64,000 nucleotides of DNA from Cyanophora paradoxa CCMP329 (taxonomy: Eukaryota > Plantae > Glaucophyta), in contig QPMI01000470.1 of NCBI GenBank assembly GCA_004431415.1, positions 372,001 through 436,000 on the forward strand, written 5' to 3'. The notes beneath the pieces were generated by a model. That model had not been told where the DNA came from, did not search any database, and saw only the letters and a program-made list of their open reading frames with translations. The translations under genes were made by a program, and so were the position numbers. Positions 7,585 through 15,509 of the stretch are shown here, piece after piece (the first letter of the stretch is position 1; each line of letters starts with the position of its first letter).

Positions 7585-10500
7585 ATGGGCTGCAAGTCCG
7601 GCAAGCACAAGCGCGATTCGCGGCCAGCCGCAGCTTCCGGGCCATCGAGGACAGCCGAGGTCAATGTAGTCCTCGGAACAGAACGCCCTGCAGCTTCGCG
7701 TGCTGCGGGGCCTACGGCCGGGACGTACGCGCAGGACGTCGACCCGAGACCTAGGCCTGCAGCTGCCCAGCTGCAAGCCCCTGCGCAGAATGCCCAGCTC
7801 GTCCCAACCGGCGACGCGTACGGGGCCGCTCCGAGGCCGCAGCCGTCCTCAGCTGTGGGGTCCTCGTTGCCCAAGCGCTACGACCTGTTCATCTCGCACA
7901 AGCAGTCCAGCGCGACGCACCTCGCGCGCGCCGTCAAGACGATGGTGCATCTCTCTGTGCGCGTGCCCGTTCGTTGTCGATCTGACTGACGGATCCGCGC
8001 AGGCCGAGAAGCTCGCCCTCGAGCGCGGCATCAAGATCAGCATCTTCCTCGACCGGGACGATCTGAACGACATCCAGGACCTCAGCGCCAACATCCGAGC
8101 CTCCGGCGCCGTACTTTTGTTCCTCACAAACGGTGCGCGGAATAGCCCGACGTCGACCTAGCGAGCCCGCTCCTGGCTGTCTTTAGCTCTACCTTCCTGG
8201 CTCCTGCAATTGCAAGAGGTACCGGTCTACCTTAGCCTAGGTTACTCGAAATCAATATCGGCTGCAGCTGGTTCTGGTTTATGCATAACAGATCTGACCG
8301 AATGGCCTTGGCCGCGCAGACGTGTTCAAGAGCAAGTTTGTCCTGCAGGAGCTCAACGCCGCCGTCTCAGCTGGCGTCAACGTCGTGCCCCTGTGGTGCG
8401 CTCGCGGCTTTTCTCGCGCTGTCTCTCGTCCGACGAGGCGCGTCCTGCGTGCAGGGACCGCGAGCCGCCGAACGGCATCCCCCAGTTCCCCTCGCGTTCG
8501 TTCTCGTGCCTCCCTCTGAACCTTGTTACTCGCGCTGACTTTCGTCGCACGCGCGTCTTCTGCAGCCGCCACAGTCGAGCTCCCGTCGCCGGCGGAGCTC
8601 GCGGGCGTGGGCCTGGACGTGCCCTCGGCCCGCGCCCTGCTCGAACGCGTCCTGAAGATCAAGGCGGACACGTACCAACCCGACGGCGAGGCGCACGTCA
8701 TCTGCATCGCGAACGTGCTCGCCCGGTGCGGCATCGACGTGCGGAGCGCCACGGGCCCCATCGCCCAGGTGCCCATCGTCGCTACTTCACGGGCGATTCG
8801 CCGGCTCACCTTTGAATGCAGTACGCCCGAAGCTGGCTGGAGTCGGAGACGCTGGCGAAGGACCTCGAGCTGTACGTGCCGCCGAAGGCGACGACGGACC
8901 CGGCGCGGACGAACGTCGTCGACCTGTTCGAGCACGCGTCGCAGTTCCTCCGCCGCTTCTCCCCGGCCTCGGCCTCCGCCGCGGGAGAGCAATTGCAAGG
9001 GCCGCGCGTGCTGCTGCTCTTGGGCGACCCGGGCTCCAGCAAGTCGACCTTCCTCTCGTTCCTCCACCGCGAGGCCTGCCGCCAGCTCGCCGTGCAGCGA
9101 TCGGCGCCCGTGCCGGTCACCTGTCTGGTTCGGCTGCCGAACGTGGGCAGGGACAACGCCCGCTGCGGCCTGCGCAAGTACGTGGCGGACGAGCTGGGCG
9201 TCAAGCCCAGCGAGCTCCCCGCCCTGCACAAAGAGTGCGCCGTTATTATAACGTCATCTCTGCGGTCTTAAACGGCTCTCTCAGGCGCGGGCTGGTGCTG
9301 CTTCTGGACGCGTACGACGAGCTGAACGAGGCCGCGAACCTCTGGGTCACCAACGAGATCGGGGACTGGGCCTCGGCCGCGATCGTCACGTGCCGCTCCT
9401 CGCACACCGCCCTCCTCACGAACTACAGGGTGCGCCTCTTTCGGCGCCAGCGCTACGTATGCACTGCACTCGAATCGTCATCGAATTCGTTCGATGCAGG
9501 AGTGTTTCGCAAGTGCTTCTGGTCTTGTGGAGCTCTGTACGCACACTTTCGGCCGAGATCAGGTTCTTTTCACGAGGCTCTTCGCATTTTATTCTTATTT
9601 CATGACTTGCAATCGCCTGCACAGGTTCTGGATTACCTCCAGCAGTACGTCAGGCTCCACGGGCGGAGCGACGGCTCCCCGTGGGGCGCGGACGAGTATA
9701 TGCGCTGCATCGAATCCACGCCGGGGGCGTCGAAGCTGGTGCAGAACCCGTTCACACTCAGGTTTTCCCGCCACAAGTTCGCCCTCATCATAACTCCTAA
9801 CAAGCGTTATTCGCGATCGTCAGCATGGTTGCCCGAGTGCTGCCACAGATTGCGAGCGACCGACGGTGAGTTCAACTATTTTTATCGTTGCTCGCTCATT
9901 CCCCATGGGCCAGTTTCGAAATTGATGTCGCTCCTCGCAGCACCAAAGCGACTGCTCCACGCAAGGGCAATCCATCCAAGAACTCGAAGACAGATCTAGA
10001 CCTGGTGTCGGTGCTGGAGCTGTACGTCTACTTTGTCAAGGTGGCTTCGTGGTCTAGCGTGGCAGCCAAAACAGTGCACACGTCTGACTGTGCTGAGAGC
10101 AGGATTGGTTCGAGCGCCAGTGGAAGAAGCTCCTCCTGTCTCGCGGCAGCTCCCCTTGGCCGAAAGCAGCAGGTGACCATGGGTTTATTGACGCGCCGCT
10201 TTCGTTCTGCAGCTGCCGCTCAGCGCCTGTGGCGCAGAGCGGTGGGAGCTGCGCAACTTCCAGTCCTATGCGGAGGACTTCTGCCGCGAGCTCGCTGAGA
10301 ACATGTACAGCGTGCGTCATGCCAAGCTTACAGAAACTTCGACTTCAAACAATTTATTTGCGCTGTTGCGTGAAATCAGGCGGCAATCTCTTCTGTTACC
10401 TGCCAGCTTGCAAAATCGAACGAGGAGATGGGAGTTAGGCGCCCGCGGCCCCCGGCTGGCGCGCTGCCCGCAGCTGCAGCCGGCCCCACTCCGGTGCCTG

Positions 10501-13500
10501 CATCAGAGGCGCGCTGTGTTGAGCTTCTGATGACAGAGGAGCCCCTCGACAAGCTTGCACGCGACTCATCCCCGCTCCGTTTCGCGCCGGCCAACGACGT
10601 CCACAAATCCGTGCACGTTCGATTCCTGCACAAGGCGCGTTTCGCCATGACAACGCTGCCGTGCGATGATTGTTTAATCATGCTTTGGTTGGCAGACGCT
10701 CCTGGAGTACTTTGTAGCGGACGGGGACTTCGCCAAGTTCGACGCCGTCAGTCTTTTGCCCTTCACTAGTACTGGCACTGTTAGTTTCTGAAACGAATTC
10801 TGAATCGTTCGCGAAATTGGCGTCCGCAGATGACGTCCTCCCAACCCGATCCCGTCGCACGGACGCGATCGGACGCGAACGCCCTCCAGACCGAGAGCAC
10901 ATTGCACGCTCGGTGAGTGCTGGCTACGAGACTTTGAGAATCGAATCGCACATCCTCTGAGATGAACTGTTTGTGTGTGAGTTTCGCAGGCTTCTCGTTG
11001 GCGAGCCAAGCATCCTTCGTTTCCATGCCGACCGGAGTCGAGCAGATGCAGACTATCGAAGCGTACTCGCGTTTCTTTGACGCTGACACGATTTGACATC
11101 CGATCTTAATGAATTGCGCAGCATCTGCTGCGGCTGCTTTCGAAGAGCCGTCGGAAGGACGCGGTCGAGGCGGACATTACGGCGGCAGCCAACGCCATCA
11201 CGATCCTCAATTATGGTGACATCCGATGTCTTGCATGTCAATGCAAGGCAAGAGCAACTCACGCCCTGCAGCGGGGTACTCCTTTGCGTGCAGTTACCTG
11301 CGGGGCATCCGTGTGGCAGGGGCGGACCTGCAGCGCCTCGAGGCGTCGGGGGCAGACCTGCGGGGGGCTGACCTGTCGGGCTGCGCCCTGGACGGCGTCA
11401 ACCTGCGGGGGGCGAACCTGCGCGGGGCGCGCCTCGATGCGTGCAAGGTAACCCTCAGGCCCGCACTGCGATGGCTCGAAGAAGGATTCAGCTCACTGGC
11501 CATCAGCCGAGTGCGAGCTTTCCCGATGCAGCTTAAGATCGATCATGGAGATCAGCATGCGCTGACAGGGGCCGCAGGACGGGCTCCACATCGTCTCGGG
11601 CAGCCGAGATGGGACAGTGCGGATGTGGGACGTGGAGACGGGGTCGGAGCTGCGGCGCCTGGAGGGGCATTTGGATAAGGTCACCTCGGTCGCCGTGTCT
11701 CCGGTGCGCCTTGCTATCGCTGAGGCGAGGGCCTAGACTGGGCGGGGAGCAGCGTCGGCGCCCCTTGTTCCGTCGAGAGGCGCTCGGCGGGAAGCTCTTG
11801 CTTCAGGCTCTGGGGGGCGCGCTGACGGGGGTGCCTGCTGGGGCCACAGGACGGGCGCCGCATTTTCTTGGGCAGTGAAGATAAGACAGTGCGGGTGTGG
11901 GATGCGGAGACGGGGTCCGAGCTGCGGCGCATGGAGGGACATGCGGGCCCGGTCAACTCGGTCGCCGTGTTTCCGGTGCGCCTTGCTGTTGCTGGGCCGC
12001 TGTTGCTCCGGACTCAAAAGAGTGCGGGCTGACGGGGGTGCCTGCCGGAGCTCCAGGATGGGCGCCTTATCATCTCTAGCCGCGGAGGTTTCGTCTCGTG
12101 CAGTGACGATAAGACTGTGCGGGTGTGGGACGCGGAGACGGGGTCGGAGCTGAGACGCCTGGAGGGTCATTCGGATAAGGTCATCTCTGTCGCCGTGTCT
12201 CCGGTGCGCCTTGCTGTCGCTGGGGCGAGGGCCTATGCTGGACGGGGCCGGGTCCGGGGCGCCTCCTGCTCTGTGGAGAAGCGCTGGGCGAGAGCTCTTG
12301 CTTCAGGCTCTGGGGGGCGCGCTGACAGGGTTGCCCGCCGGGGCTGCAGGACGGGCGCCACATCGTCTCAGGCAGCTTTGATGGGACGGTGCGGGTGTGG
12401 GACGTGGAGACGGGGTCGGAGCTGCGGCGCATGGAGGGGCGCTCGGGTCAGGTCTTCTCGGTCGCTGTGTCTCCGGTGCGCCTTTCTGTTGCTGAAGCGA
12501 GGGCCTAGGCTGGGCGGAATCGGGGCCGCAGTGCCCCTCGCTGTTTCGAGAGGCGCTGGGCGGGAAGCTCTTGCTCCGGGATCCGGGGTGCGCCCTGACT
12601 TATGGTCCTGCCGGGGCTGCAGGACGGGCGCCGCATCGTCGCGGGCTGCTGGGATAAGATGGTGCGGGTGTGGGACACGGAGACGGGGTTGGAGATGCGG
12701 CGCCTGGAGGGGCACTCGAAGTATGTGGCATCGGTCGCCGTGTCTCCGGTGCGCCTTGCTGTCGCCAAGGCGAGGGGCTAGGCTGGGTTGGGCGGGGGCC
12801 GCGGCGACCCTTTCTCTGTCGAGAGAAGCTAGGCGGGAAGCTCCTGCTCGAGGCTCAGAATGCGTGCTCAGGGGGGTGCCCGCCGGTGCCACAGGATGGG
12901 CGCCGCATCGTCTCGTGCAGCTCGGATAAGACGGTGCGGGTTTGGGACGTGGAGACGGGGTCGGAGCTGCGTCGCCTGGAGGGGCACTCGGGTCTCGTCC
13001 ATGAGGTTGCCGTGTCTCCGGTGCGCCTTGCTATTGCTGAGCCGGGGGCCTAAGCTGGGCGGGGCGGAGACCGCGGTGCCCCTCGCTCTGTAGAGAGGCG
13101 CTGGGAAGGAAGCTCTTACTCGGTACCTGGGGGAGCAGGCTGACGGGGGTGTTTGCCGGTGCTGCAGGACGGGCGCCACATTGTCTCAAAGTGCTCGGAT
13201 AAAATGGTGCGGGTGTGGGACGCGGAGACGGGGTCGGAGCTGAGACGCCTGGAGGGGCATTCGGATAAGGTCAACTCAGTCGCCATGTCTCCGGTGCGCC
13301 TAGCTGACAAGTTGCTGTCGCTGAGGCGAGGGCCTAGACTGGGCGGGGAGCTTCCACGGCACCCCTCGCTCCGTCGAGAGGCGCTGGGCGGGAAGCTCTT
13401 GCTCTGGGCTCTGGGGGGCGTGCTGACGGGGTTGCCTGCCGGGGCCGCAGGACGGGCGCTGCATTGTCTCAGGCAGTGAAGATAAGACGGTGCGGGTGTG

Positions 13501-15509
13501 GGATGCAGAGAAGGGGTCGGAGCTGCAGCGCCTGGAGGGACACTCGGGTCAGGTCATATCTGTCGCCTTGTCCCCGGTGCGCCTGGCTGTTGCTGAGCCA
13601 GGGGCCTAGGCTGGGTAGGGCCGCGGCCGCAGCGCCCCTCGCTCTATCAGGAGGCGCTGGGAGGGGAGCTCTTGCTCCGGGATCCGGGTTGCACCCTGAC
13701 TTGTGGGCCTGCCGGGGCCACAGGACGGGCGCCGCATCGTCTCTGGCAGCTCGGATAAAACAGTACGGGTATGGGACCTGGAGACGGGGTCGGAGCTGCG
13801 ATGCCTGAAGGGGCACTTGGGGTGGGTCACCTCGGTCGCCTTGTCTCCGGTACGCCTTGCTGTCCCCGAGGCGAGGGCCTAGGTCGGGTGGGGCCGGGGC
13901 CGGGGCGCCTCTTGCTCTGTGGAGAAGCGCTAGGCGGGAAGCTCTTGCTCCGGGCTTGAGGCACAGGCTGACGGGGTCGCCTGCCTGAGCACCAGGACAG
14001 GCGCCATATCGTCTCTTGCAGCGGGGGATCCGTCTTTGGCAATGGTGACAAGATGATACTGGTGTGGGACGCGGAGACGGGGGTGGAGCTGCGGCGCCTG
14101 GAAGGGCACTCTGATCCGGTCACATCGGTCACCATGTCTCCGGTGCGCCTTGTTGTTGCCAAGGTCAGGACCTAGACTTTGGAGGACAGGGGCCGGGGTG
14201 CTTCTCGCTCCGTCGAGAGGTGCTGGGCGGGGAGCTGTTGCTCCAGGCTCGGTTGCGCTATCTGACGGGGGTATCACCGGGGCCGCAGGACGGGCGCCGC
14301 ATCGTCTCGGGCAGCCGGGATAACACAGTGCGGGTGTGGGATGCTGAGACGGGGTCGGAGCTGCGTCGCCTGGAGGGGCACACGTCTTGGGTCAACATGG
14401 TCGCCGTGTCTCCGGTGCGCCTTGCTATCGCTGATCATGAGGTAGGACCTAGGCTGGGCGGAATCGGGGCCGCAGCGCCCCTCGCTCCGTCGAGAGGCTC
14501 TGGGCGGGGATCCGGAGCTGTTGCTCCGGGCTTGGATGCGCTATGTGACGGGGGTGTTTCGGTGCTGCAGGATGGGCGCCGCATCGTCTCGGGCAGCTCC
14601 GATAAGACGGTGCGGGTGTGGGACGCGGAGACGGGGTCGGAGCTGCGGCGCCTGGAGGGGCACTTGGGGTGGGTCACCTCGGTCGCCGTGTCTCCGGTAC
14701 GCCTTGCTGTCCCCGAGGCGAGGGCCTAGGCCGGGTGGGGCCGGGGCCGTGGCGCCTCTTGCTCTGTACATGTGGAGAAGCGCTGGGCGGGACACGCGTT
14801 GATGGGCGTGCCTGCTGGGGCCCCAGGACGGTCGCTGCATCGTCTCGGGCAGCGGAGATGGGACAGTGCGGGTGTGGGATGCGGAGACGGGGTTCGAGCT
14901 TCAGCGCCTGGAGGGGCACTCGGATCGTGTCTGCTCGATCGCCGTGTCGCAGGTGCGCCTTGCTGTTACCGAGGTGAGGGCCGGGCTGCGGCGCCTCTGG
15001 CTCTGCCGAGGGCCCGGGTGGGCGGCGCCTCTTGATCTGCCGAGAGGCGCTGGGTGGGAAGCTCTTGCTCCGGCTTGGGGGCGTGAGATGACGGGGTTGC
15101 CCACTGCGGCTGCAGGACGGGCGCCGCATCGTTTCGGGCAGCTCGGATAAGACGGTGCGGGTGTGGGACGAGCATAAGGTCTCTGAAGCAACGGTGCCAG
15201 GTTCTCTAACGGTTTCTCTCGACATATCCACTCACCTTTTTGCAGGCCATTTTCTGTACTCTTCGCATCTTTCAGACGGCGTCCGGCGCCCCGCCGGAGC
15301 TTGCGGGGGCCATCGTGCGCCACCCCTCCGCCCCCGTCATCCCCACTGCCCGCCCGCCCATCCAACCACCGGCGCAGTACGACGGGACGACGTCGCTGGG
15401 CGGGCGCCTGCCCACCCTCTTCGAGGAGCTGGGCGCGAGGTTCGAGGAGGGCGCCGGGGGCGGGGAGGAGCCGCTCGACGAGGACTGCCCCGTCGAGCTC
15501 TTCGACTAG
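7585..15509 (+). CDS. NLR/STAND-like protein: TIR + NACHT-like NTPase + pentapeptide repeats + 14 WD40 repeats (about 30 exons)
   Basis: N-terminus MGCKSGK. TIR motifs [25 protein letters not shown]. Walker A-like [13 protein letters not shown], Walker [12 protein letters not shown], then QNPFTL, FLHK|[27 protein letters not shown], pentapeptides [11 protein letters not shown]...GANLRGARL and the WD40 exons. Stop TAG at 15507-15509. Confidence 0.9.
11578..15178 (+). repeat. Tandem array of exon+intron units (about 210-290 bp), each exon encoding one WD40 repeat
   Basis: Exons start at 11578, 11850, 12057, 12350, 12623, 12895, 13168, 13451, 13724, 13996, 14289, 14571, 14827 and 15116. All read cag|GAY...CCG (once CAG)|gtRcgcct. 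Lengths are 126 nt, except 147 nt for units 3 and 10 and a partial last unit. Confidence 0.95.

Follow-up and report, generated by a model that had tools for sequence, protein, structure and literature searches.

A gene of the glaucophyte alga Cyanophora paradoxa CCMP329 ends in an array of WD40 repeats in which each repeat-length unit has an exon of its own. The gene occupies 7585..15509 on the plus strand of the 64,000-nucleotide window analysed here (positions 372,001 to 436,000 of contig QPMI01000470.1, assembly GCA_004431415.1), and all coordinates below are positions of that window. The array is the 3' portion of a TIR-NACHT-pentapeptide-WD40 gene that is intact and spliced. We consider the gene to be, more likely than not, an intron-rich NACHT-pentapeptide-WD40 NOD-like receptor (NLR) whose HET-E-like sensor evolves in concert and happens to be intronised. 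The original prediction for this locus had seen in the array a set of interchangeable exon cassettes for receptor diversification by exon shuffling and/or combinatorial splicing. Instead, the variety of the sensor seems to arise through recombination of DNA and through selection, not from the mixing of exons at the level of splicing.

According to the mechanism we propose, one 126-nt WD40 unit with an intron in the a-b loop would have been amplified, and its copies re-homogenised, through unequal crossing-over and gene conversion. Every repeat would thereby have inherited an identical intron position and phase. Crossovers could fall anywhere in the unit of ~273 nt, recombining variants of the b-c loop with variants of the d-a loop. 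Selection would preserve the scaffold and a repeat count near 14 (two 7-blade propellers) and would favour new residues on the top face. By analogy with related families, the protein is probably located at the membrane via N-terminal acylation, the top faces of the propellers would bind foreign or damaged-self protein, with the ligand located between propellers, and oligomerisation of NACHT would activate the TIR domain, leading to NAD+ cleavage, defence signalling or cell death.

Layout of the WD40 exon array

Thirteen complete units lie between 11578 and 14952 on the plus strand, and one partial unit follows. Eleven of the complete exons are 126 nt long and two are 147 nt long; all are bounded by GT-AG introns and, as had been predicted, are in phase 0 at both ends. 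Unit 1 (11578..11703) and unit 2 (11850..11975) are of the 126-nt type, and the intron behind unit 2 has an internal deletion and measures 81 nt. Unit 3 (12057..12203; 147 nt) has a 7-amino-acid (aa) insertion in the b-c loop. Units 4 (12350..12475), 5 (12623..12748), 6 (12895..13020), 7 (13168..13293), 8 (13451..13576) and 9 (13724..13849) are again 126 nt, unit 10 (13996..14142; 147 nt) carries a 7-aa insertion placed as in unit 3, and units 11 (14289..14414), 12 (14571..14696, the nearest to the array consensus) and 13 (14827..14952) complete the set. Partial unit 14 (15116..15193) encodes strands b and c and then non-repeat sequence, and its donor at 15194 is given by an RNA joint. The predicted span of 11578-15178 was therefore right at its start and short at its end, since the last array exon runs to 15193 and two more exons follow it.

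The 13 introns of the array (11704..15115) are 81-163 nt long, mostly 146-147 nt, and are homologous to each other. The remaining introns of the gene are 50-83 nt, with one exception of 187 nt. Pairwise identity among units is 80% for exons and on average 74.5% (range 65-89%) for introns, and introns 1-13 align end to end. The Tandem Repeats Finder score of the array is 2522, far beyond chance. The claim that the flanking introns are all homologous holds for these 13; the 67-nt intron before unit 1 is not clearly homologous to them (53-65% over ~61 columns). In the stretch that opens with the intron before unit 1 and closes with the intron after the next tail exon, 15 of 15 introns are in phase 0, as are 10 of 19 elsewhere in the gene.

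Equal exon length and one shared phase follow whenever a 126-nt coding unit with an intron inside it is duplicated in tandem. The symmetry of frame is thus a by-product of duplication, and the correct observation that any exon can be skipped without a frameshift is no evidence of a cassette system. An intron-containing repeat unit is also to be expected here because the other exons of the gene have a median length of 94 nt.

The array exon has the length of a repeat, as predicted, and it is not the same thing as a Pfam repeat or a blade. It is a circular permutation of the WD40 repeat, which Pfam matches in two pieces in each exon. In the predicted structure, each exon supplies three strands (b, c and d) to one blade and strand a to the blade after it, and the intron falls within the a-b loop. 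The first strand a (model residues 12-17) comes from the end of exon 19, which brings the total to 14 repeats. The single-sequence model of the WD40 region (predicted local distance difference test, pLDDT, 70; predicted template modelling score, pTM, 0.51) has ~56 strands, equal to 14 blades, and matches repetitive and double propellers; the relative placement of its two rings is unreliable. Fourteen repeats would fit two 7-blade propellers, as HET-E has likewise been modelled (PMC12222747). Exactly 14 repeats are present in five of the eight Cyanophora proteins that have ten or more, as expected for such a pair of propellers.

Units 3 and 10, which are seven apart, have their 21-nt insertions at the identical position of the b-c loop, on the top face, with 14 of 21 bases alike. 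They are possibly equivalent blades of the two propellers. A duplication of a whole propeller of seven units, which these insertions brought to mind, was rejected, since divergence at offset 7 (0.233) is no lower than at other offsets.

Exchange among the units

The repeat units have exchanged DNA, as the original prediction had proposed, and the exon is not the unit of exchange that it had envisaged. Units far apart in the array are no less similar than neighbouring ones. At its 3' end, an exon tracks the downstream intron (Mantel r 0.41, 0.54) and not its own 5' half (r -0.16). In a test resembling the pairwise homoplasy index (PHI), sites close together are more compatible than remote ones, both when exon and intron are taken together (p 5e-5) and when introns (p 5e-5) or exons (p 0.026) are taken alone; clustering of rate variation and errors of alignment could add to this signal. 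The sequences of units 9 and 12 are near-identical at the 3' end of the exon and over much of the intron behind it, including a donor variant private to the two, and their divergence begins inside the intron. These patterns together indicate that exchange occurred and that the ends of its tracts ignore exon borders. The units are mosaics and have become homogenised within this gene.

Probable diversifying selection at the sensor sites

In the HET-E-type repeat, selection acts on codons 7, 9, 25 and 27, which flank the conserved codons 8 and 26 and belong to the top face, where they lie in the d-a loop and b-c turn (PMC1805685). The conserved Val and Asp of the Cyanophora array are 18 residues apart, as in the HET-E repeat, and this spacing allowed the equivalent sites to be fixed in advance. 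The equivalents of codons 7, 9 and 25 take variability ranks 1, 2 and 3 among the 42 columns (chance 3.5e-4), and the residues that had been listed as variable match the unit alignment exactly. The equivalent of codon 27, after the Asp, ranks only 11th and is not hypervariable. The pattern of variable sites does not need introns, since a bacterial protein (P0049) and a fungal one (P0025) vary at matching columns.

Codon models agree with the proposal that the top-face sites diversify, and the suggested dN/dS check gave omega above 1 there. Overall omega is 0.25-0.30. Model M2a beats M1a in three tree settings (p 3e-4 or lower), and in three of four it selects columns 17, 41 and 43, which are the three top variable HET-E-equivalent sites. 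When the four equivalent sites are fixed beforehand, omega is 1.7-3.3 at these sites and 0.16-0.31 elsewhere, and omega = 1 is rejected in six of six settings (one-sided p 0.027 to <0.0001, depending on the tree). Our confidence in diversifying selection at the HET-E-equivalent sites is moderate to good.

The rival that fares best is an old tandem amplification followed by drift, in which the variable sites are unconstrained propeller surface and no diversification is ongoing. We regard it as rather unlikely. Drift predicts that the variable codons differ no more than the introns do. In a comparison that uses no tree, however, p at codon positions 1 and 2 of the four sites is 0.61 against 0.27 in intron interiors, and pN at the four sites is 0.57 against a pS of 0.26 elsewhere. 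The variable sites also show an excess of transversions (transition/transversion ratio 0.71 versus 1.56), and the fixed-sites test speaks against drift in every setting.

Several points weigh against concerted evolution with selection, and some of them favour drift directly. Exons are only 80% and introns 75% alike. The best internal identity over 100 aa is 83%, just under the 85% that defines high internal conservation in PMC4986451; compared with this array, those of HET-E are younger and more uniform. In a search for single gene-conversion tracts, none was significant after correction (best global p 0.15). Top-face sites are also the most variable ones in the divergent WD40 arrays examined, and the comparison of M1a with M2a loses its significance once the exon is divided into two partitions (p 0.13). 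The codon models are our own code applied to 13 short unit sequences, and the tests of selection are subject to the small number and shortness of these sequences, to saturation and to recombination, which inflates such tests. In two DNA runs, no letter departs from the window; these runs consist of short-read contigs, probably of one strain. Finally, the Walker A motif described below is non-canonical, which would weigh against a receptor function that we infer from family knowledge. Higher internal identities over 100 aa, of 88-92%, are found in the paralogues P0005, P0009, P0016 and P0021.

Splicing of the array

Spliced contigs cover the gene in two probable RNA runs from different studies, and they confirm the splice sites of the array. 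The joints listed are 3-4, 4-5, 6-7, 7-8, 8-9, 9-10, 10-11 and 13-14, all between neighbours and all in both runs. Joints 5-6 and 11-12 have 31-mers in common and appear as loose ends. Ten joints lie beyond those listed; by arithmetic rather than by direct view, they are the nine remaining canonical joints and one DNA joint, which leaves no room for a skip joint. Exon skipping was looked for in the RNA contigs of both studies, and none was seen among the joints listed. Since 89 of the 91 possible skip joints would generate new 31-mers, abundant skipping should have shown; the evidence consists of assembled contigs, from which rare isoforms are dropped. On present evidence, the mRNA appears to be spliced constitutively with its units in order, and a new mechanism of diversification based on splicing is not shown.

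The suggestion that symmetric exons are skipped or chosen in varying sets, so that one gene yields many propellers, appears quite improbable in this light. It draws on the fact that any skip keeps the frame, on a precedent in the leucine-rich repeat (LRR) exons of brown-algal ROCO genes (PMC11378527) and on introns 5 and 13, which have no clear branch-point motif in their last 45 nt. Skips 1-13 and 5-12 are indistinguishable from canonical joints by 31-mers, and RNA run X15 has no depth over 11670-12063, an interval that takes in unit 2 and the last part of unit 1 and that run X17 covers. The gap in X15 looks like drop-out or filtering and not like a 1-3 joint, because it includes the end of the unit 1 exon, which such a joint would cover. 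Besides the joints between neighbours, closed propellers poorly tolerate a change in blade number, and changes of single repeats can inactivate het-d (PMC12222747). Conserved intronic selector elements are not supported either: intron divergence (0.27) equals synonymous divergence (0.26-0.29), and since the introns are no more conserved than synonymous sites, there is no sign of such elements.

An active system across the ~20 NLR-like genes, in which alternative propellers arise by regulated skipping under biotic challenge or by somatic or mitotic rearrangement of units, would be a long shot. If true, it would be the first combinatorial WD40 immune repertoire in a glaucophyte.

The summed depth of contigs is several-fold higher at 14428-14821 in all four runs. 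The peak was considered and rejected as evidence for collapsed extra copies of unit 12, because short contigs common to several units gather on a consensus-like one and contig depth does not measure copy number. Most likely, the peak consists of shared short contigs placed on unit 12.

Proposed exchange between loci

Exon shuffling between loci, as in Ectocarpus or Tetrahymena, would move whole exon-intron cassettes among family members or from orphan copies; the ~20 paralogues do have a common 42-aa register, several with conserved repeats, yet we hold such traffic to be very doubtful, since the WD40 repeats are 73% identical within the gene and 54-68% identical to those of the closer paralogues, the best match of each complete repeat lies in its own gene (at the protein level, among the sampled paralogues), the tracts disregard exon borders, and searches with units and introns (tblastn and blastn) for inverted cassettes and for the orphan cassettes that the original prediction had suggested seeking gave no meaningful match outside the array in the 64-kb window.

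Architecture of the NLR-like protein

The gene has 35 exons and encodes 1535 aa, with the frame open across all exons. The gene model was built from coordinates alone, and its exons were compared with the databases one at a time. A stored protein of equal length, P0001 (EukProt name tig00020801_g13965.t1), contains 35 of the 35 exons verbatim and was the query for whole-protein searches. From the N-terminus, the order is an MGC motif, TIR, NACHT, helical domains, pentapeptide repeats, 14 WD40 repeats and a short tail. The protein thus has the NLR plan of an N-terminal effector (TIR_2, below cut-off) and a C-terminal repeat sensor (14 WD40), and the earlier description of it as an NLR-like receptor stands.

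Exon 1 (7585..7944, plus strand) begins with Met-Gly-Cys, a possible myristoyl/palmitoyl anchor, and contains the beginning of the TIR domain. A Met-Gly start with a nearby Cys, located here at 7585-7600, occurs in 8 of 19 Cyanophora family members, which suggests lipid anchoring. The TIR-like domain (aa 102-191, exons 1-4, 7888..8463, plus strand) is matched by Pfam TIR_2 with E 7.6e-5, below the gathering cut-off, and has low pLDDT in the predicted structure. Glu174 stands at what we take, from the sequence motif, to be the position of the catalytic Glu of TIR NADases.

The core of the NACHT NTPase is encoded by exons 6-7 (8822..9429, plus strand). Pfam NACHT is detected in 32 of 39 family members and is weak in the query protein itself (E 9.7e-5, below cut-off, aa 332-432). 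The assignment holds because the structure model of aa 95-870, made from 39 homologues (pLDDT 79), has NOD2, NLRC4 and NLRP3 as its best Foldseek matches (E 4e-12 onward; NOD2 and NLRC4 about 5e-12). Exon 7 contains a Walker B motif. In Walker A (9023-9049, plus strand), Ser replaces Gly before the Lys, and Lys-Ser-Thr is retained. This Ser is shared by 18 of 19 Cyanophora family members (P0002-P0024), and Gly is kept in 21 of the 21 fungal and bacterial relatives checked. As read from these sequences, the Ser-type P-loop appears to be a lineage-wide change of the NLR switch in the Cyanophora family.

Relationship to known receptors

The closest matches of the protein are ~20 paralogues with a matching style of identifier, and proteins of Mortierellaceae and Mycoavidus come next. 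NACHT-pentapeptide-WD40 NLRs are common to Mortierellaceae fungi and their Mycoavidus endosymbiont (bioRxiv 10.1101/2021.12.02.471044). These homologues share 24-28% identity over the NACHT-to-pentapeptide region, and phmmer E values go down to 1.7e-35 over ~95% of aa 270-890; the homologous NACHT-helical-pentapeptide region is followed by WD40 repeats. They have the same domain order, and matching WD40 columns vary in P0049 of Mycoavidus and P0025 of Entomortierella. The Cyanophora copies differ in having GxxGxSK[ST] in place of GxxGxGK[ST], and the Cyanophora gene is fully intronised and has a TIR domain and an MGC start. A quick tree places the Cyanophora copies together, on their own side of a branch with full support. 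Among the paralogues, the gene models of P0002 (the closest one), P0006, P0007, P0010 and P0017 have no WD40 repeats; they are either truncated annotations or sensor-less NLRs.

The HNWD/NWD receptors of Podospora anserina (HET-D, HET-E and HET-R; PMC1805685, PMC12222747) resemble the Cyanophora protein in their N-terminal TIR-related effector, their NACHT domain and their C-terminal WD40 repeats of 42 aa (126 bp) that undergo concerted evolution. In both, the variable or selected codons flank a conserved Val and Asp 18 residues apart, and 14 blades are predicted to form two propellers. In Cyanophora, however, each repeat is split off by an intron, and a pentapeptide domain is present. All 14 Cyanophora repeats belong to the homogenised set, whereas HET-E has ~11 plus three cryptic ones. 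Identity among the Cyanophora repeats is lower (no more than 83% over 100 aa), little variation occurs at the fourth site, after the Asp, and exchange of repeats between genes is not seen among the sampled paralogues at the protein level. Pfam finds TIR_2 and not the HET effector, and no HNWD protein is among the matches listed. The Cyanophora gene appears to work like the Podospora HNWD receptors and is not a member of them, since it has no HET domain, an identity just under 85% and no exchange seen between genes.

The ROCO-LRR and NB-ARC-TPR genes of the brown alga Ectocarpus (PMC3341825, PMC11378527) are also candidate algal immune receptors with a repeat-length exon per repeat, uniform intron phase and positive selection on the binding face. 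They encode open solenoids with variable repeat number; some of their exons lie inverted or inactive within introns, and splice variants are annotated. In contrast, the Cyanophora array encodes a closed propeller, has no orphan exons in the window and is joined in order in the RNA contigs. The repeat exons of Tetrahymena are likewise fixed-length, uniform-phase tandem exon/intron units that arise from unequal crossing-over. Young Tetrahymena arrays have introns longer than the background, and so does the Cyanophora array (~146 nt versus 50-83 nt). Unlike the array described here, those exons encode LRRs in thousands of genes, in phase 2, with scrambling between genes and an association with retrotransposons, none of which is shown for Cyanophora.

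A literature search, with most subscription papers outside its scope, found no description of Cyanophora NACHT-WD40 receptors or of WD40 arrays with one exon per repeat. The array extends the HET-E mode, in which repeats are homogenised and equivalent top-face codons are selected, to a free-living alga of the Archaeplastida. The NLR family concerned is otherwise known from fungi of the Mortierellaceae and from their Mycoavidus endosymbionts. The homologous introns also provide a built-in neutral yardstick, which bacterial and other intronless arrays do not have. It allows direct measurement of the rates and tract ends of repeat exchange and of the excess change at the sensor sites.

Other features of the gene and the window

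Exon 19 (11272..11510, plus strand; RNA piece 11271-11510) encodes the pentapeptide repeats (aa 829-861; Pfam PF00805, E 8.6e-16) and, at its end, the first WD40 strand a. One intron of the helical region, at 10635-10695, is of the GC-AG type; it is needed for the open frame and agrees with P0001 and with an RNA piece that ends at 10632. The two exons of the C-terminal tail (15246-15314 and 15378-15509, plus strand) are given by RNA joints, and the stop codon is at 15507-15509. The tail does not align with Mycoavidus P0049, a partial protein, past the WD repeat. At 505-1804, the window also holds a second tandem array without a Pfam match, in which ~17 copies of a 78-bp unit are 96% identical and open in several frames as a 26-aa repeat.

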